64,000 nt of DNA, from the IMG/VR virus record IMGVR_UViG_3300005613_000002, positions 124,001 through 188,000 of that record. One strand, given 5' to 3'. Each line of letters opens with the position of its first letter. The first letter of the stretch is position 1. Positions 8,367 through 62,265 of the stretch are shown here, piece after piece. The notes below the pieces were generated by a model. It saw only the letters and a list, made by a program, of their open reading frames with translations, was not told the DNA's origin and made no database searches. The position numbers and the translations under genes were made by a program.

Positions 8367-8544
8367 CTAAAATAATTATTATGAGTAATAAAAAAATTAA
8401 TAACATTAAAGAAAGTCTTGAATATCTTAAAAAGAATAAAACAGTTTCAACAAAACAACTATTTGATGATATTGAGACTGAAACAATTTATGATTTAAAA
8501 GCAATGGGATATATTGGTTTTGGTAAAAATAAACATTAAGGTAT

Positions 8545-8629: not shown

Positions 8630-8905
8630 CAAAATTTAATAAAAATGAAAGCATACGGATTAAATAAAAAATTTAGGTTTAATTATCCAGATAATCATCC
8701 ACCAAAAGGATGGGTTAATTGGTGGGAAACAGAAATGGGTAGTGTTAATAAAGGGAGAGCCAGACAAGAAGCTAAACGTAATTTAAGAAAGGAGATTAAT
8801 GGTGAAAACGACTAAAAAAGATAATGATTGTGGTTGTGGTAAACCATTAAAAATTAATGACAAAAGAAAGAAGAAGTTTATTAAAAAGAAAAAGAGAAAA
8901 AATAT

Positions 8906-8986
8906 GCTCAAGTGATGTAACGGTAGCCATGCTTGTTTCAAAAGCAAGTGTCTAATGACGTGTGGGTTCGATTCCCACCTTGAGTA
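8906..8986 (+). tRNA. tRNA-Leu(CAA)
   Basis: CTTGT-TT-CAA-AA-GCAAG arm; long variable arm. Confidence 0.85.
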
Positions 8987-9330
8987 CAAATAATTGAAAA
9001 GATGAATAATGAAGAAATTGAACAATTAAAGAGAATGGTTGATAGTTATATTTATAATTTAACTAAAACACCAAATACAGCTAATCCTAAAGAAATTGAA
9101 CTTGCAAATTTAGTAAGAAATAAAATAAATCAGACTAATTTCAATAAAAAACCAGTTGAACAAAAACCTACTTGCACATATAGAAATCATTTTTCTGATA
9201 TTGAGGATTATGGTAGATGTAGAAAATGTAGGGCAGGATTTAGCTTTATATAATAATTAAAACTATTTATAAATGATGAAAACAAATAAAGAAAGGGTAT
9301 CAGTTTTCTAAGTATAAAAACTTAGAAAAT

Positions 9331-9624
9331 ATGAAAGCAAAAAGAATTATTGATGAAACCACAAATCGTGGTGATTTTAATCGTGCATATAAAAGTTATT
9401 TAGCACAGACAGGGAAAATTCGTTGTGGTTATTGTAAATATAATCGTAGTTGTAATAATCCTAGTCATTATGGTGGTTATGAGGATGATAAAAATGGTTT
9501 AAGATATCCTAGTTGGAAATTAGTTTCAAAAAATAGAAAACAATGGATGGAAAAACCGTTAAAGAAAACAACCAGAACAATTATGAGAAATAGTTCTGAT
9601 TATATCACTTTCAAATGGAAGTGA
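9331..9624 (+). CDS. Small basic hypothetical protein with CxxC motif
   Basis: 97 aa ORF. Confidence 0.5.
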   Translation: MKAKRIIDETTNRGDFNRAYKSYLAQTGKIRCGYCKYNRSCNNPSHYGGYEDDKNGLRYPSWKLVSKNRKQWMEKPLKKTTRTIMRNSSDYITFKWK

Positions 9625-11767: not shown

Positions 11768-12856
11768 ATGAAAATACTAGAAAAAATAGATTGGAGTGTC
11801 TTAGACACATATATTGAAAATAATTTAATTGTTTCAAACAAACATCCAGATTATGATATTTGGATATTAAATTATTCACCAAAAACACAATATAATCAAT
11901 TATGGGATGAATATACTTTATCTTGTCGTGGACTTATTATTGATGCAGAAGGTAATATATTAGGTAGACCATTTCAAAAATTTAAAAATTTCGAAGAATA
12001 TGACCCATCAGAAATTGATATGTCAAAAAAATATGAAATCTTTGAAAAAATGGATGGTTCGTTAATTATTTTATTTTATTACTCTGTGACTAATGAATGG
12101 ATTGTTGCAAGTAGAGGCTCATTCATATCTGAACAATCAGATGAAGCAAGAAAAATGCTTAATAAAATTGACAATATTTTTAGTAAATTAAGTAATAATT
12201 TCACATACATATTTGAAATATTATATGCTGAAAATAGAATAGTCGTTAACTATGGAAATAGATGGGAACTAGTAATGTTAAGTTGTATCGACACTGTTAC
12301 TGGTATTGAATTGAAACATAAAAATTTAGTTGGTGGATATTCTGATTATTTTTCAATTGTGAAAAAATATGATCTAAAAGTTAATGATTTATTTGAACTT
12401 AAAAAACTTGATGAAAATAATAGAGAAGGTTTTGTGATTAGGTTTGAGGATGGTTTTAGAATTAAAGTTAAATTTGAAGAATATGTGAGATTACACGGTA
12501 TTCTTACAAATGTGTCTAATGTTACAGTTTGGGAACACTTAATGAATAAATATGATTTTGAATTATTATCAGATAGAGTTCCAGATGAAATGTATACTTG
12601 GTTAAATAAAACTATAAGTAAATTACAAATAGAATATAATGAAATTGAAAGATTAGCACTAAAAGAATTTGTGAGAATTTATCATATAAATAATATTACA
12701 ACTCGTAAAGAATTTGCAATGGAAGCATTGAAAAGTAAATATCGTTCAATATTATTTAATGTGTTTGATAGAAAATCTTATGATATCATCATATGGAAAA
12801 TGATAAAACCAATTCGTAGCACACCATTTAGAGATGGTTATGAATATATTGCTTAA
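11768..12856 (+). CDS. T4 Rnl1-like RNA ligase
   Basis: CRGLI, KFKN, EKMDGS (motif I), FE, NRIVV, EGFV, KVK. Confidence 0.85.
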   Translation: MKILEKIDWSVLDTYIENNLIVSNKHPDYDIWILNYSPKTQYNQLWDEYTLSCRGLIIDAEGNILGRPFQKFKNFEEYDPSEIDMSKKYEIFEKMDGSLIILFYYSVTNEWIVASRGSFISEQSDEARKMLNKIDNIFSKLSNNFTYIFEILYAENRIVVNYGNRWELVMLSCIDTVTGIELKHKNLVGGYSDYFSIVKKYDLKVNDLFELKKLDENNREGFVIRFEDGFRIKVKFEEYVRLHGILTNVSNVTVWEHLMNKYDFELLSDRVPDEMYTWLNKTISKLQIEYNEIERLALKEFVRIYHINNITTRKEFAMEALKSKYRSILFNVFDRKSYDIIIWKMIKPIRSTPFRDGYEYIA

Positions 12857-13003
12857 ATATAATTAACTGAAAAACAATAAGATATAAATTAATTTAATGG
12901 TTTTTAAAAAAAGATTAAAATTTTGTTGTTTGTTACGTATTTATGACATATATTTGTACCTCAATTTAGAGAATAGAAAACAACAATTATTAAATACAAA
13001 AAA

Positions 13004-13084
13004 ATGAAAACTAATAAAACATATTACGGTTATAAATCATATAAGAAAAATCTTATTGATATCGGGATTGTTTTGTTAAATTGA
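13004..13084 (+). CDS. Leader peptide 2 (MKTNKTYYGYKSYKKNLIDIGIVLLN), putative attenuator
   Basis: 26-codon Tyr/Lys-rich ORF; ATCGGG (13061-13066) complementary to terminator CCCGAT; TATATTTG and GTATTTAT motifs upstream. Confidence 0.8.
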   Translation: MKTNKTYYGYKSYKKNLIDIGIVLLN

Positions 13085-13119
13085 TAACAAAGTATAAACA
13101 ATGATTTTATATAAACATT

Positions 13120-13150
13120 GAGACCCGATTCGAAAGATTCGGGTCTTTTT
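13120..13150 (+). terminator. Attenuator terminator 2
   Basis: AGACCCGA / TCGGGTCT hairpin with U-tract. Confidence 0.85.
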
Positions 13151-13365
13151 GTTTTATAGTAAATTGTGAAAATATTGAAAGTTATTTGAAATTGTGATAG
13201 AAAATTTAAATGAAAAATTATTAAATGAATTTGTGTAACATACGCAATCGTGAGATAAAAAAACAAGAACAGTGGAAGGTGCTGACAGGCATTGATTCGG
13301 GAAATAATTTAGTAGGTTGGGTAAGTATAAAACAAAAGTAAAATAATGAGTAGACATACTAATAG

Positions 13366-13450
13366 ACATTTGTAGCTCAGTTGGTAGAGCAAGGGAACAC
13401 GTTTGCGTATCTTTAATCCCTGTGCGTAGGTTCGAATCCTACTGAATGTA
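13366..13450 (+). tRNA. tRNA-Lys-like gene with 20-nt expanded anticodon loop
   Basis: AGGGA/TCCCT stem encloses ACACGTTTGCGTATCTTTAA. Confidence 0.6.
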
Positions 13451-13471
13451 AGAACCTATTAGTATGAAGTT

Positions 13472-13552
13472 GGATAGGTAGGTAAGTGGTTAAAACGGGT
13501 GGACTGTAAATCCATTGCTTCGGCTTCGGGGGTTCGAATCCCTCTCTATCCA
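13472..13552 (+). tRNA. tRNA-Tyr(GTA)
   Basis: GTGGA-CT-GTA-AA-TCCAT arm; long variable arm. Confidence 0.9.
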
Positions 13553-13586
13553 CAACAGGTTACTAAATAATAGTAACATTAATGAT

Positions 13587-13661
13587 ACACCTGTAGCTCA
13601 GATGGCAGGTAGCTACGCCCTTTTAAGGCGAAGGTCATGGGTTCGAGTCCCATCAGGTGTA
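13587..13661 (+). tRNA. tRNA-Lys(TTT)
   Basis: CGCC-CT-TTT-AA-GGCG arm. Confidence 0.85.
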
Positions 13662-13788
13662 CTTCGAGATATTTTGCAGTTTTTGACTCTTTCAATAAAA
13701 ACTGAGAATAGTGGACAAGGTACGAAAGGAATTTCCAAATGTCAGAGATAATTTCAATGACGTGAACTAACCAATAATGTTCACAAAC

Positions 13789-13872
13789 GGGTAGGTATGC
13801 AAATTGGTGAAGCAAGCGGTCTGTAAAACCGTGACGTAAGAGACAATGGCGGTTCGAGTCCGTCCCTGCCCA
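13789..13872 (+). tRNA. tRNA-Tyr(GTA)
   Basis: GCGGT-CT-GTA-AA-ACCGT arm; long variable arm. Confidence 0.9.
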
Positions 13873-13901
13873 CATTACTAAAAAATAGTAATAATAGGCA
13901 T

Positions 13902-13976
13902 TCCCCTATAGCTCAGTTGGTTTAGAGCACCTCACTTTTAATGAGGGAGTCCTCGGTTCGAGTCCGAGTGGGGGAA
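13902..13976 (+). tRNA. tRNA-Lys(TTT)
   Basis: CCTCA-CT-TTT-AA-TGAGG arm. Confidence 0.9.
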
Positions 13977-14058
13977 CTAAATATTTTAATTTTCCTTGCA
14001 ATTATAATTATTTTTTGTTATTTTTAATTAAAATAATTCTATATAAGTATTAATAAAT

Positions 14059-14760
14059 ATGACAAAGAAAATTAAAAAAACAAAAACTGTAGTTACAACA
14101 GTAATAGAAGAAAATGTAACAAATGAAAAAACACACATTATTTGTATTTTAGACCGTTCTGGGTCAATGACTAAAATCATGGATGATTCAATTGGTGGTT
14201 TTAATACATTCCTAAAAAAACAAAGAGAATTACCAGATGATGCAACTATAACTATTTCAATATTTGATGATAGATATGAAGTATTATTTGATAATGTTGA
14301 TATTAAATCAGTTAAAGATTTAACTAACAAGGAATGGTATCCAAGAGGTACTACTGGATTATATGATGCAATTGGAAAAACAATTAATAACACCAAAGCA
14401 GAATTTGAAAAACTTGGTGATGAAAAACCATCAAAAGTATTAGTTTGTATAGTAACTGATGGACAAGAAAATTCAAGTAGAGAATATCAACTTGATGATA
14501 TAAAAAAATTAATTGGTGATTGCGAAAATGATAATTGGAACTTTATGTATTTAGCAGCAAACCAAGATGCATTTGCAGTTGGAACATCATTTGGTGTGTC
14601 TGCTGGTAATACATTTACATATAAAGCAAATGGAACTGGTGTTCAAAGTATGAGTAATACTTTGAATAACGCAACAGTTAGTTATAGATCAATGTCATCT
14701 AATATGAGTAGTTTTGCTGATTCTTCAAAAAATTTAATTGATAATATTTCTAAAGAATAA
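14059..14760 (+). CDS. vWA domain protein
   Basis: MIDAS motif ILDRSGSM, TGLYDAIG, IVTDGQENSS. Confidence 0.85.
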   Translation: MTKKIKKTKTVVTTVIEENVTNEKTHIICILDRSGSMTKIMDDSIGGFNTFLKKQRELPDDATITISIFDDRYEVLFDNVDIKSVKDLTNKEWYPRGTTGLYDAIGKTINNTKAEFEKLGDEKPSKVLVCIVTDGQENSSREYQLDDIKKLIGDCENDNWNFMYLAANQDAFAVGTSFGVSAGNTFTYKANGTGVQSMSNTLNNATVSYRSMSSNMSSFADSSKNLIDNISKE

Positions 14761-14994
14761 ATATTATATATTTTTTATAACTATAATAATTGGGATGGTT
14801 TTTACTATCCCTTTTTCATTAAATAATCATTAATATTATTCACAAAAAAAACGTAAAAGTCTATACCACAAATCCTTAAAAAATATCGAAAAATTAATTT
14901 AAAATAAACTCTAAAGTTTATCAAAACCCTTGTATTTATTGAAACAAATAAATATATTTGCAATAATAATTTATAATAAAAATTTATAAAAAAT

Positions 14995-17547
14995 ATGGGA
15001 AAAAACGTTAAAACTTATCCTAGAAAAGAAGTTGAAAAAGCTACTTTAGAATATTTTAATGGTGATGAACTTGCTCGTGATTCATGGATAAAGAAATACT
15101 GTCTAAAACAAAATGACACACTATATGAGCTAACACCAGATGATATGCATCGAAGAATAGCTAAAGAATTAGCAAGAATAGAATCTAAATATCCTAATCC
15201 ATTAAGTGAAGAAGAAATTTTCCAAACAATTAAACAATTTAAGCGAATTATTCCACAAGGTTCACCAATGTCTGGTATTGGAAATGATTATCAAGTCGTA
15301 TCATTAGGAAATTGTTTTGTGATTGGAAATAATGCTGACTCATATGGTGGGATTATGAGAATCGATGAAGAACAGGCTCAATTAATGAAACGTAGAGGTG
15401 GTGTTGGTCATGATTTATCTAAAATTAGACCAGAATTAACACCTGTAAAAAATACAGCAATTAGTTCAACAGGAATTGTTCCATTTATGGAAAGATATTC
15501 TAATTCAACTAAAGAAACTGCACAATCTGGTAGAAGGGGTGCATTAATGTTGTCAGTATCAATCAAACATCCAGATTCAGAAGCGTTTATAGATGCGAAG
15601 ATGACTGAGGGTAAAATCACTGGTGCTAATGTTTCAGTTAAAATTCATGATGATTTTATGGAATCGATTATTGATAATAAAAAATATAAACAACAATTCC
15701 CTATTGATTCAAATAACCCAATTTTTGAAAAAACCGTTGATGCTGGAAAAATATGGAAAAAGATAGTTCATAATGCTTGGAAATCAGCAGAACCCGGGAT
15801 TCTATTTTGGGATAAAATTATAAATGAATCAATTCCATCATGTTACGGTAAAATATGGACTGAAACAAGTACAAATCCATGTGGTGAATTACCATTACCA
15901 CCTTATGATTCTTGTAGATTACTTTCTGTAAATTTATTTGATTATGTAGTTAATCCGTTTACCCCAGAAGCATATTTCAATTGGGAATTATTTAAAAGTG
16001 ATGTTGAAAAAGCATTAAAATATATGGATGATATTGTTGATTTGGAAATTGAGAAAATCAATAAAATTATCGAAAAAATAGATTCTGACCCAGAAGACGA
16101 AGAAATTAAATGGATTGAACGTAAGTTATGGAAAAAAATTCGAGAAATGACAAGTCTTGGACGTAGAACTGGACTTGGAATTACTGGAGAAGGTGATATG
16201 ATTGCTGGAATGAATTTACGTTATGGTACTGATAAAGCAACTGATTTTGCTGAAGAAGTTCATAAACAATTAAAATTAAGCGCATATCGTTCATCAGTTA
16301 AATTGGGTAAAGAACGTGGTGCTTTCCCAATATATGATAGTAATCTTGAAAAAAATAATCCATTTCTTTTAAGAATAAAAGATGAAGACCCTGAGTTATA
16401 TGATGATATGTTGAAATATGGTCGCAGAAATATTGCATTATTAACTATAGCTCCAACTGGAACAGCTTCATTAATGACTCAAACAACATCAGGTATTGAG
16501 CCAGTGTTTTTACCAGTATATAAACGAAGACGTAAAATTAACCCAAATGAAAAAAACGTCAAAATTGATTTTGTTGAGGAAGGTATTGCTTGGCAAGAAT
16601 ATATTGTTTTCCATCATAAATTTGAATTATGGTTAAAAATAAATGATTATGATGTCGATGTAGTTAAAACAATGAGCAAAGAACAATTAGATGAAATAGT
16701 TAAAAAATCACCATATTATAAAGCAACATCTAATGATATTGATTGGGTTAAAAAAGTTGAAATGCAAGGTCGAATTCAAAGACACATTGACCATTCAATT
16801 TCAGTAACTGTTAATTTACCGAAAAATGCTACAGAAGAAATTGTTGGGAAAGTTTATGAAACTGGTTGGCGTACAGGATGTAAAGGAATTACTGTTTATC
16901 GTGATGGTAGTAGAAGTGGTGTTTTGATTGGTGTTGATGAAGAAGATAATAAAACAATCAAAGATATTCATGCACCAAAAAGACCGAAAAGATTAAAAGG
17001 TGAAATTCATCATTTTCAAAATTCATTAGAAAAATGGATTGCTGTTGTTGGTATTAAAGATGGAAGACCATATGAAATATTTACAGGTAAATATGAAAAT
17101 GGTCTAAGTAAATTATCAACAACAATTACTGAATGTGAAATTGTAAAGAATATTGTTGATGTCGAAGAAATTATTGATGGAAAGTCGATTAATGTAAGAA
17201 CAAAACGATATGATATTGAATATCTTGATAGTAATGGTGAAAAACATGTACATACTGGACTTAATCATGCATTCAATCCAGAATTTTGGAACTATGCTAA
17301 ATTAATTTCAGGAATTTTAAGGCATGGTATGCCAATTAAATATATTCATGAATTAATTAATTCACTTAGTTTTAAAGAAGATTATATTAACACATGGAAA
17401 AATGGTGTTGGTCGTGTAATAAAAAGATATATTAAAGATGGTGAAAAAGCCAATGGTGTTTGTCTTGACTGTGGAAGTGGTGAGCATCTTGAATATAAAG
17501 AAGGTTGCTTAACTTGCATGGCATGTGGTTCATCTAAATGTGGATAA
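14995..17547 (+). CDS. nrdJ: Class II (adenosylcobalamin-dependent) ribonucleotide reductase
   Basis: GNCFV, TNPCGELPL, TIAPTGT, SGIEP, KGITVYRDGSR and C-terminal Cys cluster. Confidence 0.92.
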   Translation: MGKNVKTYPRKEVEKATLEYFNGDELARDSWIKKYCLKQNDTLYELTPDDMHRRIAKELARIESKYPNPLSEEEIFQTIKQFKRIIPQGSPMSGIGNDYQVVSLGNCFVIGNNADSYGGIMRIDEEQAQLMKRRGGVGHDLSKIRPELTPVKNTAISSTGIVPFMERYSNSTKETAQSGRRGALMLSVSIKHPDSEAFIDAKMTEGKITGANVSVKIHDDFMESIIDNKKYKQQFPIDSNNPIFEKTVDAGKIWKKIVHNAWKSAEPGILFWDKIINESIPSCYGKIWTETSTNPCGELPLPPYDSCRLLSVNLFDYVVNPFTPEAYFNWELFKSDVEKALKYMDDIVDLEIEKINKIIEKIDSDPEDEEIKWIERKLWKKIREMTSLGRRTGLGITGEGDMIAGMNLRYGTDKATDFAEEVHKQLKLSAYRSSVKLGKERGAFPIYDSNLEKNNPFLLRIKDEDPELYDDMLKYGRRNIALLTIAPTGTASLMTQTTSGIEPVFLPVYKRRRKINPNEKNVKIDFVEEGIAWQEYIVFHHKFELWLKINDYDVDVVKTMSKEQLDEIVKKSPYYKATSNDIDWVKKVEMQGRIQRHIDHSISVTVNLPKNATEEIVGKVYETGWRTGCKGITVYRDGSRSGVLIGVDEEDNKTIKDIHAPKRPKRLKGEIHHFQNSLEKWIAVVGIKDGRPYEIFTGKYENGLSKLSTTITECEIVKNIVDVEEIIDGKSINVRTKRYDIEYLDSNGEKHVHTGLNHAFNPEFWNYAKLISGILRHGMPIKYIHELINSLSFKEDYINTWKNGVGRVIKRYIKDGEKANGVCLDCGSGEHLEYKEGCLTCMACGSSKCG

Positions 17548-17834
17548 TTATCAATTAATCAAGAAATTTGCTTTAAATTATTAGCAAATTTCTTGATTAT
17601 ATAAAAATTTATTTTAATTTTGTTCTAAATTAAATTAATATGATTAATCTTGAAAACAGAATTTCCCAAAGTAATGATAATGAAATTCGTATTAATGGTT
17701 ATTTCTTAACTATTGATGATTTAACTGCATTATCCAGAGATTTTATGGTTGATTGTCGTGATGGTTATGTTAGTTATGATATTTCATATATTGAAGCATG
17801 GCTAAAGAAACATAAACAAATCGTAAAATAAAAA

Positions 17835-19133
17835 ATGAATAGAGGATTCAATTTTAGGGTTTACCCAACTGAAAAACAACGTGAATATTTTAATGAATGT
17901 TTTAGAATTTCAAATTTCATTTATAATTATTCTTTAAGACAACAAATAGACATATCTGAAAGTTTAGATGATATGGGAATTAAAGACAAAGAAGAAAGAA
18001 ATAAATATATGACAGTTAATAAATTATATTTCAATAAATATAAAATGAGTAATTTATTAACTCAAATGTCTAAAACAGAAGAATATTCCTTTTTAAATAT
18101 CAATTCTTTATTAAGAGGTTATTCGTTAAGACAAATTGATAATGCTTTTAAAAATATGAGAAAAACTGGTGCTGGTTTTCCTAAATTTAAAAATAGATTA
18201 TCAAAAAAAACATATTCTAGTCAAATTCAAAAAAGAACTAAATTTCATTTAAATTTAAATAATGAAAAATTTGGATATTTATCGACACATAAAATTGATA
18301 AATTAAAAATATCATGTCATGATGAATATTTTAGAAAAAATTATAAAGATAATACAAAAATTAAATTAAATTCATTTACTATTACAAATAAAGGTAATCA
18401 ATATCATATATCAATTCAGGTAGATGTTATTGACCCAAATTTTAATTTAAAACATAAAGAAAGTGAAATTAATGAAAATTCATCAATAGGAATTGATTTA
18501 GGAGTTAAAAGACCAATTACTACATCAAATATTAATGATTTCGATGAAAAAATATTTTCAACTCAAATACAATTATTAAAAACGTATAGTGAAGAATTAA
18601 AAAAATTATCATCAATATTAAATAAAAAACGTGATTACCATAAAAAAAATAAAACAGATATTAAATATTGGGAAAGTGTTAATTATATTAGAATAAAAAA
18701 TAAAATTAGTTCACTACATATTAAAATTGGTAATATTAGAAGTAATATTCAACATAATATAACAAAAAAATTAATTAATTTAGATAATGTTGATTCATAT
18801 ATTCTTGAAGAATTAAAAACTAAAAATATGATGAAACGTAGTGGGAAAGGTTTATCTAATAATAAAAGTGGGTTAAATAGAGTACTTAGTGATGTTGGAT
18901 TATATGGAATAAGAGAAAAATTAACATATAAAGCTGAACGTATTGGTAAAAATGTTATTACAGTACCACCACAATATACTTCACAAAAATGTTCGAATTG
19001 TGGTCATATTAATAAGAAAAATAGAAAATCTCAAAGCAAATTTAATTGTGTTAAATGTGGTTTTAAAATTAATGCAGATTTAAATGCTGCGATAAATATA
19101 AAAGATAAATATTTTAAAAAAAATGTTGTTTAA
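17835..19133 (+). CDS. TnpB/Cas12f-like RNA-guided nuclease (compact type V effector candidate)
   Basis: OrfB HTH RVYPTEKQ, RuvC-I GIDLG, RuvC-II LEEL, CSNC/CVKC Zn finger, RuvC-III NADLNAAINI; CRISPR array 200 nt downstream. Confidence 0.85.
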   Translation: MNRGFNFRVYPTEKQREYFNECFRISNFIYNYSLRQQIDISESLDDMGIKDKEERNKYMTVNKLYFNKYKMSNLLTQMSKTEEYSFLNINSLLRGYSLRQIDNAFKNMRKTGAGFPKFKNRLSKKTYSSQIQKRTKFHLNLNNEKFGYLSTHKIDKLKISCHDEYFRKNYKDNTKIKLNSFTITNKGNQYHISIQVDVIDPNFNLKHKESEINENSSIGIDLGVKRPITTSNINDFDEKIFSTQIQLLKTYSEELKKLSSILNKKRDYHKKNKTDIKYWESVNYIRIKNKISSLHIKIGNIRSNIQHNITKKLINLDNVDSYILEELKTKNMMKRSGKGLSNNKSGLNRVLSDVGLYGIREKLTYKAERIGKNVITVPPQYTSQKCSNCGHINKKNRKSQSKFNCVKCGFKINADLNAAINIKDKYFKKNVV

Positions 19134-19335
19134 ATCGAATATTGTAATTATATTCGCATATTGAAATAAAGTTCTTTGAAAGATAAATATTAAAATCATG
19201 TGGGTGATGTGGCATCCGAGATTTAAAAAAATAAAGTTCTTAGTAAATAAAGCAATTTTATCTCCAATAGGATTTAAAAAATGAATTGAATTTATGATTA
19301 TAGAATTGAATCTTACTACTTTTATAAATGTATTA

Positions 19336-19666
19336 TAACTACAACGATGTCTTCGCATCATTCCATTGACATTCTGGTAGTGTTTACCTAAAAAAGTAAG
19401 GTAACTACAACCTACCCATAACATAAACGTTTTCAGATTTCGGTAGTGTTTACCTAAAAAAGTAAGGTAACTACAACCAGCAAATGTTTTATAGTTTTTA
19501 CCATCAAGGTAGTGTTTACCTAAAAAAGTAAGGTAACTACAACAAGTGAACTACAAGAAATATACAGCGAATTGGTAGTGTTTACCTAAAAAAGTAAGGT
19601 AACTACAACATTTCCAATCGTAAGATATTTTGGGTTGTGTTTACTAAAAAGTATGGAAACTACAAT
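19336..19666. CRISPR. Mini CRISPR array, 36-nt repeat GGTAGTGTTTACCTAAAAAAGTAAGGTAACTACAAC
   Basis: Identical repeats at 19376, 19442, 19508 and 19574; 30-nt spacers; partial repeat TAACTACAAC 19336-19345; degenerate repeat ~19633-19666. Confidence 0.92.
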
Positions 19667-19760
19667 GATGATGGTGCAATGAATTGGGGTAGTTTGAAAA
19701 AGACAATTGTAATAAAATTGTAATAAAATTGAAATAAAAATTGAAATAAAAATTGAAAAA

Positions 19761-22025
19761 ATGAAAAATGTAAAACTCGATGAAAACTATTTCCTTGTAT
19801 CTCAAGATGTAAATAGTAATGCAACAATTGAAGTTGCAAAAAAAACAAATCACATCTTTGTAGTTGATGTATCTTATTCAATGTACCAAGACTTACCACT
19901 AATTAAAAAACAATTAAAAAACAAGTTATCCAATGTAATGAGGGATGGTGATACCATTTCTATTGTTTGGTTTTCTGGTAGTCGTGATTGTGGTGTACTT
20001 AAAGAAGAAGTTGAAGTTAAATCTTTAAAAACTTTAACAGACTTAAATGATGCAATTGATAGATGGTTATCACCTATTGGTTGTACAGCATTTCAAAGAC
20101 CATTGGAAGTGGTTTATGATATTATTGGTAGAATAAAAACTAATCGTCCAGATAGTATATTCTCAATGATTTTCCTTACTGATGGTTATAATAATGATTG
20201 TTCTTGGAATGGGGTTATTGAAGCACTTAAACCATTAGAAAATGAACTAGCATCATCAACATTTGTTGAATATGGTTATTATGCTGATACACGTAAAATT
20301 ACTGAAATGGCTGCTTTACTTGGTGGCGAAAAAGTAAGTACCTCTGATTTTGATGAATTTGAACCATTATTTGAAAATAAGATTTCTTCTGAACTTATGG
20401 GTGGGAAGAAATTAGTAGTTGAAGTACCTGATAATCATCTATATGATTTCGCATTTAGTGTTTCTAATGATGGTAGTGTATTATTATATAATATTAATGA
20501 TGGTGAAGTAATGGTGAACCCAAGCGTAAAAGAACTCCATTATTTTACACCTAAAGCACTTGGTGAAGAACATGCTCCTACTACAAGTCTTTATGCTGCT
20601 ATTTATATTCTTTCAGATAAACTTCTGAATGATGATGCTGAGAAGATTTTTTATGCTCTTGGTGATAATTATTATTATAAAATGTTGGTTAATGCTTTCG
20701 GAAAACAAAAATTGAATGCATTTAAATCAGCAATTAAAGAATGTGTTGTTGATTCATCAAAAAGATTTCCTTCTGGACAATCAGCAATTCAACCAGTTCC
20801 AGATAACGCATATTGTTTGATGAATCTAATCGATGATTTAGGTAATCTTGAAGATTGTCAATTTTATCCAAATCATCCTGATTTTAATTATAAAAGAATT
20901 GGTAGTAAAAAAGTTAGTGCTGCTACAGTTTTAACTGAAAGTGAAAAGAAAAGAATTGGTGAAGCAAAAAATATTGATGAAATTAATGAAATAACTAAAG
21001 AACTTTCTGAAAATAAAGTTGATGTTAAATTTATTAATAGCAATCCAGATAGAGGTTATCCACTTACTGATTTAGTTTGGAATTCAAGTCGAGCTAATTT
21101 AAGTGTTCGCACATATATTGAAGGTGAAGCAATATTACCAAAAAACGAATTTAAGATTGATAAAGTAACTTCTTTTAGGTATAAAACATATACTTTAGTA
21201 AAAGATGGTATTGTTAATGTTAAAGAATTACCTTTAAATTTTTCTGATGCATTACTTGTATTGCTTGAAAGGAATAATGTTGAATATAAAGTAGTACCAT
21301 ATTATACTGTAAGGAATAATCATACTGTAGCACCTGATATTGTATTAGTTGACTTAACTTCAATTCCTTTAATTAATAAAGGAATGGTAAATGCTATTTC
21401 AGCAAAAGAATTAGCTAAAAAAGAATGGGAACTAAAAAAATTACAAGGCGATAAAAAAGTTTATGATTTTTATAAAAAAGAACTATTCCCTAAAACTAGC
21501 AAATCATTTGTTGATTTATTAGGTAAGGATGTTGCTGATTGGCTTAAACTTGTTGGAATTACTGATTATAATGGTTTTGCACCAAAAGTAATATCAGCTA
21601 AATCGAGCGATTCATATTTATCAGTTAATCTTGATACAAAAATTAAAGGATTATCTAGTTTACCTAAAGTAGATGTAGTTAAAACTAAAATTTTAGCTGG
21701 TACTACATTAAAACTTAATGAATGGGTTATGTCTGATGCGCTAAAAAAATATATGTCACAAACAACATCAGATATGTTTATGTCACTTTCAGGAGAACAA
21801 CAAACTGAGGTATTGCGTACATATCTTACTACCAAGTCAGATTTATTAAATGTTCGCAGAAGAAAATTATTGCAAGAGATTGCAGAAATTAAATTTGCAC
21901 TTATTTTATCAAAAAAATGGTTTACTGAATTCAAATCATTTGATGAAAATGAATTAAAATTAGTTTTGGATAGTCAATCTTTAACTTTTAAATTTGATTT
22001 AAGTGATAAAGAAGTAGAAATTTGA
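19761..22025 (+). CDS. Large vWA domain protein
   Basis: VVDVSYSM and FLTDGY MIDAS elements. Confidence 0.75.
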   Translation: MKNVKLDENYFLVSQDVNSNATIEVAKKTNHIFVVDVSYSMYQDLPLIKKQLKNKLSNVMRDGDTISIVWFSGSRDCGVLKEEVEVKSLKTLTDLNDAIDRWLSPIGCTAFQRPLEVVYDIIGRIKTNRPDSIFSMIFLTDGYNNDCSWNGVIEALKPLENELASSTFVEYGYYADTRKITEMAALLGGEKVSTSDFDEFEPLFENKISSELMGGKKLVVEVPDNHLYDFAFSVSNDGSVLLYNINDGEVMVNPSVKELHYFTPKALGEEHAPTTSLYAAIYILSDKLLNDDAEKIFYALGDNYYYKMLVNAFGKQKLNAFKSAIKECVVDSSKRFPSGQSAIQPVPDNAYCLMNLIDDLGNLEDCQFYPNHPDFNYKRIGSKKVSAATVLTESEKKRIGEAKNIDEINEITKELSENKVDVKFINSNPDRGYPLTDLVWNSSRANLSVRTYIEGEAILPKNEFKIDKVTSFRYKTYTLVKDGIVNVKELPLNFSDALLVLLERNNVEYKVVPYYTVRNNHTVAPDIVLVDLTSIPLINKGMVNAISAKELAKKEWELKKLQGDKKVYDFYKKELFPKTSKSFVDLLGKDVADWLKLVGITDYNGFAPKVISAKSSDSYLSVNLDTKIKGLSSLPKVDVVKTKILAGTTLKLNEWVMSDALKKYMSQTTSDMFMSLSGEQQTEVLRTYLTTKSDLLNVRRRKLLQEIAEIKFALILSKKWFTEFKSFDENELKLVLDSQSLTFKFDLSDKEVEI

Positions 22026-22128
22026 AAATCCACTAGTAGAAATATTAGTGGATTTTTTTATTGTTTTCTTAATTATTAATTAATTGATGTGTAATGGTAA
22101 TTCATAATTTATCTTTATTTATTATAAA

Positions 22129-24143: not shown

Positions 24144-24271
24144 GGTGTTATAGCTCAGTTGGTCAGAGCGTTGAGTGATAACTCAAGTCAGAAATTAAAT
24201 ACGAATTGGTTAAGGTTAAAACGAAAATTCTACTGATTTAATTTGCATTGGTTCAAATCCAGTTAACACCA
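24144..24271 (+). tRNA. tRNA-Ile(GAT)-like gene with ~55-nt insertion in the variable region
   Basis: GGTGTTA/TAACACC acceptor, TTGAG-TGATAA-CTCAA arm, T arm displaced to ~24247. Confidence 0.6.
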
Positions 24272-27232: not shown

Positions 27233-27303
27233 TACTTGTTAGTACAATGGATAGTGCACCCTTTCGAAAGAGGGTTATATTGGTTCGAATCCAATGCAGG
27301 TAC
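27233..27303 (+). tRNA. Degenerate tRNA-Arg(TCG)-like gene
   Basis: Acceptor, D and T arms present; irregular anticodon stem around TTTCGAA. Confidence 0.5.
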
Positions 27304-33935: not shown

Positions 33936-35543
33936 ATTATAATTTTAAGATAAATACTTCGAAAAACTTTTTTCGAATCCCTTACCTTCCTCATTAAATT
34001 TACCAACATTATTTGTTAAGGGTTATAAAATATGATTGTTTTATAACCCTTTTTTCTTTATATTTGTATATATGAAAGAAAGAAAAGCAATAACACTTCT
34101 TGATGAAGATACTGCAACCACATTTTTAAGACCATATTCAGATGAACATAGAAATTGTTTAATTGTTGTCACTGAAGATGCATATGGTGAATTTACTGGA
34201 GTTTTAACACCAATAAAAAAGATTAAGGGTAATTTAAACATTACTGATGAAGAAATTGATGAAATGATATTTAAATTGCGTTAAAATGGAGCAGATAAGA
34301 GAAAGAGTATTAGGAATTATTGAGAAATATAATTTAAAACCGATTGAACTTCCAAAGGAACATAAAGATGTTTACTCATTCATTAATGAGAATCAAGAAA
34401 GAGAAAAAGATTTCAAACCTGAAATTTCAGATAATGAATTAGGTGTAAAATATGCGAGACATATCCCAAGGGGTTGGTATGGTTTTGATATTGGTATTCC
34501 AATTGTTCCAGATTGGATGAAAATTATTAGTGAAATCACTGAATTATGTGTTAGCATTGACCCAAAATTTGAAATTCGTCAAGTTAAATTAAAATATGGT
34601 AGAATATGTTATTATGCAAGTAGTTTTATAATTGAAGATGCTGATGAACTTGATGATATTTTAAATGATAAACTATATGATAAAGCATTAGTTTATTAGT
34701 AGATCATATGAAATGAATAATTTTGAATTATTAAAACGCACATATCCAATTTCACAATATGAAAGACTTTGTGATGGTTATGAGTATATTTTAAAATATA
34801 CGACACAGAAAGAGAGAAAAGCATTTGGTGAATTACAAAGAACAATTAAAGAAGGTGAGAAATATATTTATCAAGTAGCTAAAGAAGGTAAGGAATTTAA
34901 AACAATGTGTATGTGTTTTACAAATTACAGTATAATAAGAAAACAAATATTTAAATTAGAAGACGATTAAATAATAATTTATGGATAAAAAAATAGTTTA
35001 CGTTATTGGATTTTTTTTAGGTTTCGAATATTCTACACATCATATACCAGTTAAAATAATAAAAAGAAAGAAAAATAATCACATTAACAATCATTATAAT
35101 GGGTCTAATAAAAACAATAATAAAACAAAAACTAAAATAAGGAGTTTTAATAGAAATTCAAAAGTTAATTTTATTTAATCATTTTTGTAACAATTTTTTC
35201 GAATATTCGTATAATTAAAAAACAATATATTATGAATAATGATATTACAATAAATATTGAAGATATTCGAAAATTACCTAATGGTTCTATTACAAATATT
35301 GAAACAATTAGACAAATAGCATTAACAAACGACATTTCATTATTCGATAAGATAGATGATAGATTTATGTTCGCAGGTACTTACCCTGTACTAATGAAAA
35401 TTCATAATATTTTACCAAATAAATCATTTGATATAGTGGGAGAAAAATGTAATTGTGAAACTAAAGGTAGAACTGTTTGGAGTGTATCATCAGATGGAAA
35501 GTGTTTAAGATGTGGAAAACAATATGTTAAATAATAAAATAGT

Positions 35544-35616
35544 GCTCCTGTGGCTGAATGGTTAAAGCAATGGACTCTAAATCCATTTTTTGCAGGTTCG
35601 AATCCTGTCAGGAGCG
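35544..35616 (+). tRNA. Amber suppressor tRNA (CTA)
   Basis: ATGGA-CT-CTA-AA-TCCAT arm; GCTCCTG/CAGGAGC acceptor; G73. Confidence 0.88.
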
Positions 35617-36551
35617 CAAAAAATAAATATAATGAATAAAATTATTGCCGAAGAATTACACAAAACTGAACCAGATAAATTTAAAATTTTCAGAGAATGG
35701 GGAAGTGTTAATAATAAAATTAAAGATTTTGAAAATAAAGCAAACCTAAAAACATTTAAATATCTTTTTGGTGAAGATGGGCAAAGATTATGTGAACATT
35801 TTAAATATGATTGTGAAACTAATGTTAATAAATTAAAAACATATTTAAAATATGAACAATATAACGATTTGCTTGTAAACATATATTATAATGATAATTT
35901 GTTTATTATTTAAAACAGATCAATAGATTTCATGATAAATTAGATGAAGTCAGTAGTAGACTTAAAGTAATTATTGATGATGAAACAAAAAAAGATGAAT
36001 GTAATGTTTTATCATTAAAATATTTCTTTTTAACTAATTTAGGGATAAAAATTGATGAATCTGTTGAATTTACTGTAAAACATTATCTTGATATGATAGA
36101 TAATGAGAATCCAATAACATTAATAAATGAACTTAAATAAATAAGATGGAAGTAAGTTATAATTATAATGAATTAGAATTCACTGCATATTATGATGAAG
36201 ATGGATATTTAAAATTTGTTAAAGATAATATCCATAATAAAGCATTAATGATTGAGAGTATTCAGGAAGGTAAAGGGTTTAATATTTCTAAATCTTCTTT
36301 TATGATGGATGGTTTTACTTGTCACGGAATGTATGTTCGAGTTATGGATATTAATTTATTCATACCAAAATTTATTTTCATAAAAAACAAAACTGATTAA
36401 TTATGGGAATGGATGTAGATGCTATTGTTGCAAGACAAGCAATTGAGAAAATTGGGAAAGTTTTATTAAGTGTAGAACATGGTGAACGTGAGGAAATTAC
36501 TGATGAAATTATAGAATTTTCAAAAAAACTTGAAAAAAAGTTTGGAAATAA

Positions 36552-36577
36552 TGTAACAAAATAGTAAGTTTGACGTA
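36552..36577 (+). promoter_or_regulatory. ECF-type promoter TGTAAC-N16-CGTA
   Basis: Motif copy upstream of the Pth2-like gene. Confidence 0.65.
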
Positions 36578-36632
36578 TATATAATTAAAGAAAAGAATTG
36601 AAATAATTCATTAACAATTAAATTTAAAAATT

Positions 36633-36959
36633 ATGAAGTAGGTAAAATTAGTTACTATCACAAGAAAAGATATCGATGCAGGATATCAATTAGTTCAATC
36701 AGCACATTCTTTAGCTGAATTCGCACACCAATTTCCAAATCATTTTAATGAATGGATGGAAAATTCAAAGTATTTAGTCTCATTATCAACTGATAATGAA
36801 GATAAACTTCAAAGATTATTTTATAAATTACAAGACCGTGGTGCTAATGTTGTAGCATTTACTGAGCCTGACATTGACGACCAGTTAACATCTATTTGTT
36901 ATTTTGGTACGCCAGAGATGATTAAGATTACTAATAATTTAAATCTGGCATTATCATGA
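36633..36959 (+). CDS. Pth2-family peptidyl-tRNA hydrolase homologue with in-frame TAG at codon 3
   Basis: MK*VKLVTITRKDIDAGYQLVQSAHS...FTEPDIDDQLTSI; the ORF track catches only the C-terminal 67 aa. Confidence 0.75.
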
Positions 36960-37021
36960 GAAAAAATTTATTTAAAACAAGAGTTATGGAATATATATAG
37001 ATAAGTATTAGACCACCATAA
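36956..37021 (+). CDS. Coupled peptide MRKNLFKTRVMEYI*ISIRPP* (amber-gated arrest-like peptide)
   Basis: ATGA overlap with the Pth2 stop; TAG at 36998; ends AGA CCA CCA TAA. Confidence 0.5.
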
Positions 37022-37117
37022 TGATGTAATTAATACAAGATTCGCAATTCGCAAATCGCAAATTAAATTAACACATCACAAAAAATTAAATAATAACAAA
37101 AACAAATAATAAATATT

Positions 37118-37456
37118 ATGGAAACAATAGTAAAAACAAATATCGCTAAAATGAAAGCAGATATTAAAGAAATGGTTAAGTCACAAAAATTTTACAAAGC
37201 TCAAAGAAAAACAGAAAACTTAGTAGGTGAAAGAAAAATGTCACCAAGTGATGCAACTTATAAACATTTAAGTAATCGAGAAGATTTACGCATAATGTAT
37301 GCAGCATATGGTGTTGCAAGGGGTAAAAGTTTTTCACAAATTGAAAATAAATATCCTGAAGAAAATCATCCATTGAAAAATCGTCAAGGAAGTATTGATA
37401 GAATACTTAAAAGATATGAAATGAAAGTGGAAGTAGAGGCTGAAGTTATGGTTTAA
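37118..37456 (+). CDS. Hypothetical protein downstream of the Pth2-like gene
   Basis: RIMYAAYGVARGKSFSQIE; followed by a terminator at ~37484-37510. Confidence 0.6.
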   Translation: METIVKTNIAKMKADIKEMVKSQKFYKAQRKTENLVGERKMSPSDATYKHLSNREDLRIMYAAYGVARGKSFSQIENKYPEENHPLKNRQGSIDRILKRYEMKVEVEAEVMV

Positions 37457-38560
37457 GAAAATTAAATAATGTATTTAATTGATAAAAGGGGGAATTAGTT
37501 CTCCCTTTTTCTTGTTTATTATAATTTCTTTGTGTAGATTTACAATAAATAATTTTAAACAAAACACGATAAGATGTCAGAAGATAAGAAAAATGTTGTT
37601 GAAGAAGAAATTGTACCAAATCCAGTAAATGGTGTTGTACCAAATTTAGTAAATAATGCAGTTCCTGAATTAGCCTCAGATGAAGAACCAGTTGAAGTTG
37701 AGTTAACTGATGATGAAAAAAAAGAAAAGGAACGTGAAGAATATGTTAAATTATTAAAAGAATCTAAAATTAAATTTAAACCAGTAAAACATGATGGTAA
37801 AGTAACTACCAATCAATTTGGTGCAACTTATAAAGAAAAACGTAAACGTAAGAATAAAGCAACAAAAAAATCACGTAAAGCAAATCGTAAATAAATGAAA
37901 AAAGATATAGTATATAACCGTGTTGATGGTGAATTAAAGTATCAGGAAATTAGGTGGACTCCAAAACCAATTGGATATATACCTGATGAAAAAAAATGTG
38001 TTGCTGAATGGATTAATTATATGGAATATCATTTAAATAAAGCAAAAAATTCTGTTTATCATCTTCGTGAAGCAGAAGCACTTGCTGAAATTAGAAAAGT
38101 AACAGCATTAGGTGTAAGAACTATGATGGTTCATGGTTGTCCAGAAAGAAAAACTCCAACTGATAATATTGATGAACATGGTACTAAAATAAATTAAAAA
38201 CATGGAAAATATAAACCTAGATAACACCTATTGGGATAGAGTAACTGGATTTGTTACTGAATTACGTGTTGATTCTCGTTGGATTCTACGAAATAATGAC
38301 GATGATAAATCATATGGTTCATTACGTATAGCTTCACATCCTGATTTACCACCCGGGTATTTACGAGCGATTTTCACTTACGTTCTATCTATTCAGAAAA
38401 AAAATAATGCACAAAAATTAAAAACAGTTGAAGATTTTCAAATAGATATTACAGAACTTGAAGTATATTCAATCAATGATGATATTAAAACTGACACTAA
38501 AACATATGAAGCACCATTTAAGGAGCTTCAAGAAATGTTTGGTGTAAAAATCTTTGAATA

Positions 38561-61698: not shown

Positions 61699-62265
61699 AT
61701 GAATTTAACAGACAAACAAAAAGCGATTGAAAACAAAGATTTTACAGGTATTTACAATAGTTTTCATTCAGAAATTTTAAGTTATGTAACTTACAAAATG
61801 AATAATAGTATGGTTGCGGAGGATATAACAAGTGAAGTTTTTGTAAAGGTTTACAAAAATTTAGATTCTTATGATAGTTCAAAAGCTCAATTTAATACTT
61901 GGTTATATTTCATAGCAAATAATTCAATTATTGATTATTGGAGAAAAAACAAAAATACATCAAATGTATCAATTGGTGATTTTGTGGATAGTGAAGGAAA
62001 AGAAACTTTTCAAATTGAATCAGATAGTGAGTCAAACGGTGAAATTGAGAGTAAAGAATTAATGAATAATATTGTTAAGGCATTTGAAGGATTAAAACCA
62101 AAATATCAAAAGGTTGCAAGACTGTTATTTTTGGAACAAAAGAAATATGATGAAATTGCAGAAATTTGTGAAATGCCAATGAATAATGTTAAGGTAACAA
62201 TTAACAGGTGCAGAAAAATGTTACAAGCTCAACTACAAAACCAAAAAGTTGAATATTCACTATAA
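61699..62265 (+). CDS. ECF-family RNA polymerase sigma factor
   Basis: AEDITSEVFVKV, FNTWLYFIANNSIIDYWRK (region 2); YDEIAEICEMPMNNVKVTINRCR (region 4). Confidence 0.9.
   Translation: MNLTDKQKAIENKDFTGIYNSFHSEILSYVTYKMNNSMVAEDITSEVFVKVYKNLDSYDSSKAQFNTWLYFIANNSIIDYWRKNKNTSNVSIGDFVDSEGKETFQIESDSESNGEIESKELMNNIVKAFEGLKPKYQKVARLLFLEQKKYDEIAEICEMPMNNVKVTINRCRKMLQAQLQNQKVEYSL

Follow-up and report, generated by a model that had tools for sequence, protein, structure and literature searches.

A leader peptide and a PTH2-like gene apparently gated by a linked suppressor tRNA in a jumbo phage that otherwise uses the standard genetic code

A number of phages have reassigned a stop codon (Lak, crAss-like, Jade and Agate phages), in which case 'code change modules' made up of a suppressor tRNA, an aaRS and a release factor have been described, and genes with in-frame stops are proposed to remain silent until the tRNA is made (Borges et al., bioRxiv 10.1101/2021.08.26.457843). 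Ribosome-arrest leader peptides constitute a separate body of work: in systems such as ErmCL/ermC, SecM/secA, MifM/yidC2 and the RAPP-type ApdA/ApdP, translation of a short upstream ORF opens a sequestered start site (PMC10951233, PMC12992588, PMC7897499), and the motifs RAPP, RSPP and RAGP are arrest-prone and avoided in proteomes (PMC12992588). Arrest can also take place with a stop codon in the A site, as in the TnaC and PepNL peptides of E. coli (PMC11890864, which also cites Hayes et al. 2002 on C-terminal prolines and SsrA tagging during termination), while in mammals ribosomes that read through the AMD1 stop codon pause at the next in-frame stop because of the peptide they have just made (PMC13025110). 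Finally, PTH2 genes have been noted in jumbo phages (Iyer et al. 2021, PMC7824862), without any mention of suppressors. Here we describe a locus that combines elements of these systems. It lies within a 64,000-nt stretch of DNA (positions 124,001 to 188,000 of IMG/VR record IMGVR_UViG_3300005613_000002; hereafter the window), which is part of the 321-kb genome of a jumbo phage.

The locus starts with a tRNA gene on the + strand (35544-35617), the last of the phage tRNA island. ARAGORN assigned it the anticodon CUA, and it scored 72.5 bits against the Rfam tRNA model, the best tRNA score in the window, with an intact cloverleaf, an anticodon loop CU-CUA-AA that is shared by most of 18 relatives, and G73 as discriminator. 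No nearest isoacceptor could be singled out, all identities being about 0.7, and the tRNA bodies, acceptor stems and discriminators (G73, A73 or U73) differ between phages. Downstream, a gene encoding a PTH2-like protein starts with ATG AAG TAG (36633-36641, + strand) and then continues with GTA AAA TTA through a 105-aa domain up to a TGA stop at 36957-36959 (domain and stop, 36642-36959). The first ATG, GTG or TTG after the TAG (36639-36641) is found only at 36756, 38 codons into the frame. Further downstream is a leader ORF, MEYI-TAG-ISIRPP followed by tandem stops (36986-37024), with the inner TAG at 36998-37000, Arg-Pro-Pro at 37010-37018, TAA at 37019-37021 and TGA at 37022-37024. An in-frame ATG at 36956 overlaps the TGA stop of the PTH2-like gene; however, comparison within the family shows a stereotyped arrangement of four codons, a stop, three codons and R-P-P, and the conserved start is therefore probably the internal ATG at 36986. 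The leader ORF precedes a conserved 112-aa gene (METIVK...; 37118-37456, + strand), and the unit is closed by an intrinsic-terminator-like hairpin with an 11-bp stem and a T-rich tail (37484-37519), one of five such sites detected in the region against 0.3 expected.

The protein encoded after the TAG has the predicted fold of Pth2. It matched Pfam PTH2 (PF01981) with an E-value of 0.0015 and 19.2 bits, below the curated cut-off of 23, although many close homologues carry a precomputed PF01981 hit. A profile built from 35 family sequences hit the Pth2 structure 2zv3 at E 1.5e-7, as well as 24bt, Bit1 1q7s and 1wn2. In addition, an AlphaFold2 model (pLDDT 88.9, pTM 0.83) gave 13 Foldseek matches with E <= 0.001, which are Pth2-family structures with query-normalised TM-scores of 0.71-0.78 and E-values down to 1.6e-7. 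Gln19 and His22 (the Q..H helix motif), the acidic pair Glu75/Asp77 and Thr83 are invariant or nearly so across phage homologues down to 24% identity. In contrast, the Lys of the archaeal GKGK loop is not conserved, and aligns with Tyr15, which is Gln, Thr, Ala or Leu in relatives. The suggestion made in the sequence-only reading of this locus, that the module turns on peptidyl-tRNA recycling, is plausible but inferred, and nothing shows that RF1 levels are sensed, as that reading also proposed.

Remarkably, the stop codon at the beginning of the PTH2-like gene was found in every relative that could be evaluated. It precedes the first strand of the domain in 23 of 23 IMG/VR loci and in 79 of 79 evaluable JGI loci, and among 78 distinct related loci it is located 1-16 codons after the ATG in all cases (76 TAG, 2 TAA), following leaders of 2-16 codons (MK, MKL, MT, MKK, up to MKNKILMADEGYGSPM). 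It is also present in 6 of 6 distant GenBank relatives at 32-47% identity, including the cultured Tenacibaculum phage pT24, which has both the tRNA and the gated PTH2-like gene. The codon immediately after the stop is GTA, GTT, ATT or ATA, and never ATG, GTG or TTG. Homologues therefore do carry the stop and no canonical start follows it, the two points on which the sequence-only reading could have failed. A CUA or UUA tRNA is present in 42 of 44 related loci that have at least 1.5 kb of upstream flank, and where it lies upstream, its median distance to the PTH2-like domain is 412 nt. This does not extend to all phage PTH2 genes, as the homologues in Bxz1-like mycobacteriophages, Aeromonas and Vibrio T4-like phages, Xoo-sp13 and XacN1 have ordinary starts.

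The three parts also covary. Among the 51 loci in which the anticodon, the stop of the PTH2-like gene and the inner stop of the leader ORF are all visible, the combination is CUA/TAG/TAG in 49 and UUA/TAA/TAA in 2, with no mixed case. The two ochre loci (L035 and L097; L numbers designate individual related loci) are only 66% identical to each other in the gene, each has closer TAG-type relatives (80-83.5%), and their tRNA bodies are unrelated, so that the triple switch happened at least twice. Although indirect, this is strong evidence that the tRNA decodes the stop codons of its two targets.

The leader ORF is also conserved. Its pattern occurs once per locus in 493.5 kb of + strand, and a scan of both strands of 14 loci gave one hit per locus on the + strand, except in L035, whose inner stop is TAA and which gave none, and no hit on the minus strand. 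Of 61 distinct family copies, 59 have four codons before the inner stop and 53 have three codons between it and Arg. The terminal motif is RPP in 61, RAP in 3 and RSP in 2. Interestingly, Arg is encoded by AGA, CGA, AGG, CGC and CGT, and the first Pro by all four codons, so selection acts on the peptide. What the sequence-only reading did not see is that the leader ORF belongs to the downstream 112-aa gene: it lies 58-179 nt upstream of this gene in 58 distinct loci, even where another gene separates the leader from the PTH2-like gene. The window protein is 60-71% identical to 12 relatives, and there are 658 database clusters, all of them unnamed. It has no Pfam or PHROG match, and an AlphaFold2 model (pLDDT 90.7) gave no fold match in the PDB.

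Moreover, the end of the leader ORF is complementary to the start region of the 112-aa gene. In the window, the last Pro codon, the TAA and the first two bases of the TGA (37016-37023) can form 8 bp with 37114-37121 (TATT + ATG + G), with a predicted RNAduplex energy of -7.6 kcal/mol (z -3.4). Across the family, the consensus of the start region, ACACAUUAUUAUGG, is complementary to the consensus of the leader-ORF end, CCAUAAUAAUGUG, in which the pairing comprises the last Pro codon, the stop and about 8 following bases. The mean energy is -12.5 kcal/mol, compared to -3.2 kcal/mol for shuffled and -10.7 kcal/mol for permuted partners, and 45 of 58 pairs reach -10 kcal/mol or better. Cognate pairs were better than permuted partners in 5000 of 5000 permutations, and compensatory variants occur in L116, L134, L066/L129/L135, L029, L039, L142 and L138. 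It should be noted that the helix of the window is itself among the weakest, as 53 of 57 foreign start regions would pair better with its 5' strand, and that folding of the leader region alone is not significant (z -1.05). In addition, the spacer contains TTCGCAA direct repeats (37039-37063), including two of the three ATTCGCAA matches in the window, and an alignment of 14 loci showed TTCGCAA/TTGCGAA and TGCGTAACGCA-type palindromes at this place in related loci. These could correspond to an operator, a promoter element or an RNA hairpin, and if they hold a promoter the leader ORF and the 112-aa gene might not share a transcript.

Taken together, and with reasonable though not full confidence, we interpret the locus as a tRNA-operated translational switch, in which the suppressor tRNA(CUA) would act in trans on two dedicated targets a few hundred bases downstream. 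Without the tRNA, only Met-Lys would be made from the PTH2-like gene, and ribosomes translating the leader ORF would terminate at its TAG, leaving the AUG of the 112-aa gene hidden in the helix. With the tRNA, the whole PTH2-fold protein would be made, and ribosomes reading through the 11-codon leader ORF would reach Arg-Pro-Pro-stop. We infer that termination is slow there, as at other R-x-P and Pro-stop arrest sites, and that the ribosomes would then sit exactly on the 5' strand of the helix and free the AUG. Decoding in vivo, stalling on such a short chain, helix melting as the output and ester-hydrolase activity of the PTH2-like protein are all inferences from sequence, and R-P-P-stop is not the studied RAPP case, where Pro-tRNA occupies the A site. 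Furthermore, ordinary TAG-terminated genes show no excess of back-up stops, and an efficient suppressor would therefore extend them. The purpose of the switch, also inferred, is most likely to tie two translation-related functions to the moment when the phage's own tRNA set is expressed and working.

Compared to the recoded phages, this phage similarly encodes a suppressor tRNA that would read TAG in a host using the standard code, and has low GC and many TAA stops, but its genome appears to be standard-code and only two or three dedicated sites would be read through, at the very start of a gene or in a leader ORF rather than scattered through lysis or structural genes. The Borges preprint does not mention peptidyl-tRNA hydrolase. 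The leader ORF resembles the erm, secM and mifM attenuators in its position, its conserved C-terminal motif and the covarying helix over the downstream start, whose 5' strand lies where the arrested ribosome would sit. It differs in that the arrest site is reached only after read-through, so that the input is a tRNA instead of a drug, secretion force or metabolite, and in that the nascent chain has only 11 residues. It is not a member of the RAPP-type family, which it resembles in its proposed mechanism, given that its motif ends at a stop codon, its second residue is mostly Pro, and the downstream gene is an unnamed phage protein with no link to Sec or YidC genes. In TnaC the nascent chain also ends in Pro (Pro24), but TnaC acts through Rho-dependent transcription termination and needs free tryptophan. 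In PepNL, read-through by Trp-tRNA relieves arrest, whereas here read-through would bring the ribosome to the arrest site. AMD1 relies on spontaneous read-through, has a 384-nt extension and limits translation of its own ORF, with no dedicated tRNA or start-site helix.

Several alternatives can be considered. A global reassignment of TAG (genetic code 15) would agree with the phage-encoded tRNA(CUA), the low GC (27%) and the preference for TAA stops, and one distant relative (LR756501) has a second in-frame TAG inside the domain. However, TAG terminates 16 of 118 called ORFs in the window and 77 of 595 genes (about 13%) in the window and 15 related loci, with read-through extensions matching those of TGA genes (median 9 against 11 codons), and no other coding ORF in the window is interrupted by TAG. 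In about 40 kb of flanks, TAG ends 23 of 148 genes, and terminase, portal and a tail protein of at least 1434 aa have no in-frame stop. The genome of pT24 is 93% coding under the standard code, with 36 of 293 genes ending in TAG. Global recoding is therefore very unlikely, with the reservation that roughly 215 kb of the phage genome was not sampled, and the view of the sequence-only reading that this is local read-through holds. A broken gene or a sequencing error can be set aside: the Gln that database homologues appeared to carry at the stop position is an artefact of gene calling under code 15, the stop is present in more than 80 distinct relatives while the domain stays under strong purifying selection, and the same genome was assembled independently in ENA.

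It is also improbable that the short ORF is a start-stop uORF followed by re-initiation, with the tRNA serving another purpose, e.g. as a decoy for tRNA-targeting host defences or in interference with host termination. The stop always lies within a few codons of the first strand of the domain, and ATT and ATA may be used as rare starts in bacteria (possibly in infC), but 55 of 78 loci have GTA or GTT after the stop, which are not known starts, in distant relatives 2-17 further codons separate the stop from the domain, and re-initiation predicts no coupling between stop codon and anticodon. A less remote, though still unlikely, possibility is that read-through matters but arrest does not, ribosomes melting the helix briefly and passing on to the 112-aa gene. 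Neither the helix nor its covariation requires stalling, and the last Pro codon is biased to CCA (49 of 61), as pairing with the U of AUG would favour. On the other hand, Arg and the first Pro lie outside the helix and yet are kept through synonymous changes, the only replacements seen being Ala and Ser, giving the known arrest-permissive variants RAP and RSP, and 58-179 nt is long for simple coupling. Lastly, the gated ORFs could act like the bar minigenes of phage lambda, provoking drop-off of very short peptidyl-tRNAs or trapping tRNA-Pro on RPP-stalled ribosomes, with the PTH2-like enzyme as the phage's own remedy or the pair as a weapon against host translation. Both ORFs do end after 2-4 codons when not suppressed, TnaC overexpression depletes tRNA-Pro captured in arrested ribosomes (PMC11890864), the neighbouring gene has the predicted fold of a peptidyl-tRNA hydrolase, and the phage also encodes a tmRNA. 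This possibility is nevertheless improbable, since it does not explain the covarying helix, nor why the hydrolase itself is behind the stop.

Many large standard-code phages carry suppressor tRNAs whose targets have not been found, and the authors of the XacN1 study looked for targets and found none (PMC5852040). The present locus offers a concrete answer for one clade, with 332 relatives in JGI metagenomes. It is about as likely as not that the suppressor tRNA has been turned, in a large clade of such phages, into a dedicated trans-acting regulator reporting that the phage tRNA set is made and working. If so, this would be the first natural leader peptide that senses nonsense suppression and would give the first identified targets for these tRNAs, and the arrangement may be the ancestral state from which full TAG recoding evolved, starting with one tRNA and one or two gated genes. 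The leader would also be a compact part for synthetic biology, converting amber suppression into translation of a downstream gene. Of practical note for annotation, gene callers either truncate these genes or silently switch short contigs of this family to code 15, writing Gln where the DNA has TAG.

All of the features claimed by the sequence-only reading, namely an intact amber suppressor tRNA about 1 kb upstream of a Pth2-like gene with TAG as its third codon, and a downstream peptide with a second in-frame TAG followed by an RPP-stop ending, were found to be present. The window has a GC content of 27% and corresponds to bases 124001-188000 of the 321,624-bp IMG/VR contig IMGVR_UViG_3300005613_000002, and the same genome was assembled independently in ENA sample ERZ27256772, at 321,897 bp. 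A blastn search with 8 kb of sequence against GenBank phages returned only tRNA-level matches and no close relative. The window carries 37 tRNA genes and a tmRNA, all on the + strand, as well as a ribonucleotide reductase and DNA methylases. The suppressor tRNA at 35544-35617 has the anticodon CUA and scores 72.5 bits against the Rfam tRNA model, the best tRNA score in the window. In the region examined Rfam identified only this tRNA, and no theta or HDV-like ribozyme lies next to it. The PTH2-like frame reads ATG (36633), AAG, TAG (36639-36641), and then runs for 105 codons to a TGA at 36957-36959, the first canonical start after the TAG being located 38 codons in. An in-frame ATG at 36956 overlaps that stop and opens a short ORF with TAG at 36998-37000 and Arg-Pro-Pro at 37010-37018, followed by TAA TGA. 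Importantly, of all ORFs in the window, only the PTH2-like one is a coding frame interrupted by TAG. Between the tRNA and the PTH2-like gene there is also an 80-codon ORF (35898-36140) with no ATG, GTG or TTG near its start, which overlaps the end of the ORF at 35632-35913 in the -1 frame and could be a frameshifted or fused small gene; most relatives lack this insert.

The stop codon is conserved, which shows that it is not an error. In 23 IMG/VR loci from contigs of 6 to 363 kb, the PTH2-like domain (48-100% identical) is always preceded by a short ATG leader and a stop, 22 TAG and 1 TAA. A scan of JGI metagenomes identified 332 relatives, and of the best 80, 79 could be judged, with 78 TAG and 1 TAA. 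After removal of duplicates there are 78 distinct loci, 76 with TAG and 2 with TAA. The codon following the stop is GTA (35), GTT (20), ATT (20) or ATA (3), and is never ATG, GTG or TTG. Leaders vary from MK to 16 residues, so that what is conserved is a stop near the start rather than a particular residue. More distant homologues (32-47% identity), that is, five uncultured 460-735-kb phages in GenBank and the cultured Tenacibaculum phage pT24, show the same arrangement of ATG, one or two codons, TAG and ATT/ATA. In contrast, homologues in Bxz1-like mycobacteriophages, Aeromonas and Vibrio T4-like phages and Xoo-sp13 have ordinary starts. A tblastn search with the Bxz1 homologue, aimed at reaching XacN1 and Atu_ph07, found only mycobacteriophages, but direct reading of the XacN1 Pth2 gene showed an ordinary start and a canonical GK loop, so the coupling does not extend to that phage. 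Public gene calls for this family fall into three groups: truncated at internal Met or Val codons, started at the codon after the TAG, or translated under code 15 with Gln at the TAG. This is a systematic annotation artefact; the DNA of the database proteins that seemed to have Gln at this position reads ATG AAG TAG and ATG ACA TAG, and this Gln was thus rejected as evidence for a Gln suppressor.

Remarkably, the tRNA is linked to the stop and covaries with it. A CUA tRNA lies upstream of the gene in every IMG/VR locus with enough flank, apart from the TAA locus, which has a UUA tRNA; the one exception in position is the most divergent locus, where the tRNA lies 0.6 kb downstream. Among distinct loci with at least 1.5 kb of upstream sequence, 42 of 44 have a suppressor tRNA, and where the tRNA lies upstream the median distance to the domain is 412 nt. 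In the loci scanned it is the last tRNA of the array upstream of the PTH2-like gene. It is also present within 5 kb in pT24, where it is annotated tRNA-Sup, and in two of the five huge-phage records. The two loci with TAA in the leader are exactly the two whose tRNA has the anticodon UUA. These two loci are only 66% identical to each other in the gene, each has closer TAG-type relatives (80-83.5%), and their tRNA bodies are unrelated, indicating that the switch happened at least twice. Furthermore, one ochre tRNA is 80% identical to an amber tRNA of a related phage, which shows an anticodon change within a single tRNA lineage. Comparison with 189 other phage tRNAs gave no signal as to the amino-acid identity of the suppressor.

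A genome-wide change of code was not supported in the roughly one-third of the window's genome that was examined. A search for conserved in-frame TAGs by all-against-all ORF alignment was swamped by off-frame matches between similar loci, and gene-based tests were therefore used. In the window and 15 representative 20-kb loci, TAG ends 77 of 595 called genes and TGA ends 94, and read-through extensions are alike, with medians of 9 and 11 codons. The pT24 terminase, used as a probe for late genes of this family, found only pT24, and late genes were reached instead by walking from the left edge of the window. The structural module, at 12768-22052 of locus L148 (same genome, left of the window), begins within about 12 kb of that edge on the opposite strand. 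The genes reached encode the terminase (681 aa), a T4-type portal (665 aa), a 683-aa protein and a tail protein of at least 1434 aa with an M23 peptidase domain, none of which has an in-frame stop under the standard code; the terminase, portal and large tail protein genes all end in TAA. In the four walked loci TAG ends 23 of 148 genes, and no gene pair is joined through a TAG. The complete pT24 genome is 93% coding under the standard code, with 36 of 293 genes ending in TAG, and the gene with the longest start-less stretch after a TAG is the PTH2-like gene. Ordinary TAG terminators showed no clear difference from TGA genes in back-up stops or in the base following them, so suppression is probably partial.

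A few further sites may nevertheless be read through. In 26 of 44 distinct loci (e.g. 8790-9365 of the related locus L028), the gene upstream of the conserved 'MxDFELLKRTYP' gene ends in TAG immediately and in frame before the ATG of that gene, whereas it ends in TAA in 6 and never in TGA, although TAG makes up only about 13% of stops overall. This may be a third read-through target producing a fusion protein. The window itself, in which the homologue of the second gene lies at 34713-34970, is arranged differently, with TAG TAG at 34697-34702 in another frame. In pT24 (record LC168164, 31886-33238), an ABC-ATPase annotated as two genes (BPT24_037 and BPT24_038) is split by a TGA and continues through a TAG, and may be a pseudogene or another read-through case. 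Moreover, among the 460-735-kb phages, the PTH2-like gene of the 735-kb phage LR756501 (5001-5294 of the locus) has a second in-frame TAG at residue 32 of the domain, and two tRNA(CUA) genes lie 2 kb downstream; this genome may use TAG more widely as a sense codon.

The window protein alone is a sub-threshold match to Pfam PTH2, but a 35-sequence profile hits solved Pth2 structures at E 1.5e-7. The AlphaFold2 model (pLDDT 88.9) has 13 Foldseek matches with E <= 0.001, all to Pth2-family structures, with query-normalised TM-scores of 0.71-0.78. Gln19, His22, Trp38, Glu75 and Thr83 are invariant across phage homologues down to 24% identity, and Pro76 and Asp77 are nearly so, whereas the Lys of the archaeal GKGK loop aligns with Tyr15, or with Gln, Thr, Ala or Leu in relatives. 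We refer to the protein as PTH2-fold, on the basis of the predicted structure, and as probably an ester hydrolase acting on tRNA-linked substrates. PTH2 genes in jumbo phages have been noted before (PMC7824862), but without the stop codon or the tRNA link.

Interestingly, the leader ORF is conserved too, and it belongs to the next gene. The pattern Met, up to 15 residues, stop, up to 6 residues, Arg-(Pro/Ala/Ser/Gly)-Pro, stop occurs exactly once per locus wherever the locus extends far enough downstream, and in the 14 loci scanned on both strands there was no hit on the minus strand. Of 61 distinct copies, 59 have 4 codons before the inner stop and 53 have 3 codons between it and Arg; the window copy fits this if it starts at the ATG at 36986. 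Arg is encoded by AGA, CGA, AGG, CGC and CGT, the first Pro uses all four codons, and the only substitutions at that position are Ala and Ser, indicating that selection acts on the peptide. The inner stop is TAG except in the two ochre-tRNA loci, where it is TAA, which constitutes a second, independent covariation. The ORF always lies 58-179 nt upstream of a conserved 112-aa gene (37118-37456 in the window), and it keeps that place even where another gene separates it from the PTH2-like gene. The pattern was absent from pT24 and from the vicinity of the PTH2-like genes of the 460-735-kb phages, and this second device is therefore specific to the window's clade. A terminator-like hairpin follows the 112-aa gene at 37484-37509. 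Searches of Pfam, PHROGs and ESM Atlas, Foldseek against PDB and a profile search gave nothing on the function of the 112-aa protein, which has no recognisable relatives with a name or a known fold.

The end of the leader ORF (last Pro codon, stop, and about 8 more bases; consensus CCAUAAUAAUGUG) is complementary to the start region of the 112-aa gene (consensus ACACAUUAUUAUGG, which includes the AUG), and the predicted helix would thereby hide the next start codon. Over 58 distinct pairs the duplex averages -12.5 kcal/mol, with 45 pairs at -10 or better. With shuffled start regions the mean is -3.2, and with partners permuted among loci it is -10.7, none of 5000 permutations reaching the observed mean. 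Furthermore, loci whose start region departs from the consensus carry matching changes in the leader ORF, for example the related loci L116, L134, L066/L129/L135, L029, L039, L142 and L138. The window's own copy is weak, however, with 8 bp between 37016-37023 and 37114-37121 at -7.6 kcal/mol, and the MFE fold of the leader region alone was not significant, the helix appearing only when the two anchored segments were compared across loci. The spacer between the leader ORF and the 112-aa gene (37039-37063 in the window, and the spacers of loci L028, L029, L034, L039, L044 and L045) is filled with TTCGCAA/TTGCGAA and TGCGTAACGCA-type repeats and palindromes, and two of the three ATTCGCAA matches in the window lie there. 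These could be an operator, a promoter or an RNA element. A ribosome held with the last Pro codon in the P site and the stop in the A site would cover the 5′ strand of the helix, whereas a ribosome terminating at the inner TAG sits 18 nt further upstream and, we infer, would not melt it.

Taken together, and in the absence of expression or ribosome data, the system most likely works as follows. The phage tRNA decodes the gating stops, as inferred from the covariation, and the PTH2-like enzyme is then made from codon 1. In the leader ORF, read-through takes the ribosome to Arg-Pro-Pro-stop, where release would be slow, and the held ribosome would free the AUG of the 112-aa gene. Arrest at this site is unproven and is inferred from the literature: R-A/S/G-P-P and RAGP motifs are arrest-prone and avoided in proteomes (PMC12992588), TnaC and PepNL arrest with a stop in the A site, and PMC11890864 cites Hayes et al. 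2002 on C-terminal prolines and SsrA tagging at termination. Both outputs would therefore depend on the suppressor, which is the last gene of the tRNA island. The purpose is open, but we favor a checkpoint or timer that would tie a probable tRNA-ester hydrolase and a 112-aa protein of unknown function to the time when the phage's own tRNAs are expressed and functional. The proposal of the sequence-only reading that the switch turns on peptidyl-tRNA recycling is plausible, and the idea that the enzyme offsets the cost of suppression is compatible with this. The parts belong to known kinds, i.e. suppressor tRNAs, stop-codon gating in recoded phages and arrest-peptide attenuators, whereas the combination, the input signal and the standard-code setting are new; full-text searches found no description of a stop-gated peptidyl-tRNA hydrolase, of a suppressor tRNA linked to one, or of a leader peptide that senses suppression.

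The phage-encoded tmRNA (8007-8369; Rfam 94.1 bits) has a tag peptide ending in ELAIAA, and together with the PTH2-like gene and the RNA ligase it points to a translation-rescue theme in this tRNA island. An Rnl1-type RNA ligase (tRNA repair), a TnpB/Cas12f-like gene inside the tRNA island and a sigma-70-like factor are encoded at 11768-12856, 17835-19133 and 61699-62265. Finally, Rfam finds tRNA matches that ARAGORN did not call (13366-13450, 24144-24271, 5984-6057 and 27233-27303), one of which is 128 nt long, suggesting an insert or intron, and ARAGORN reports two tRNAs with irregular anticodon loops.
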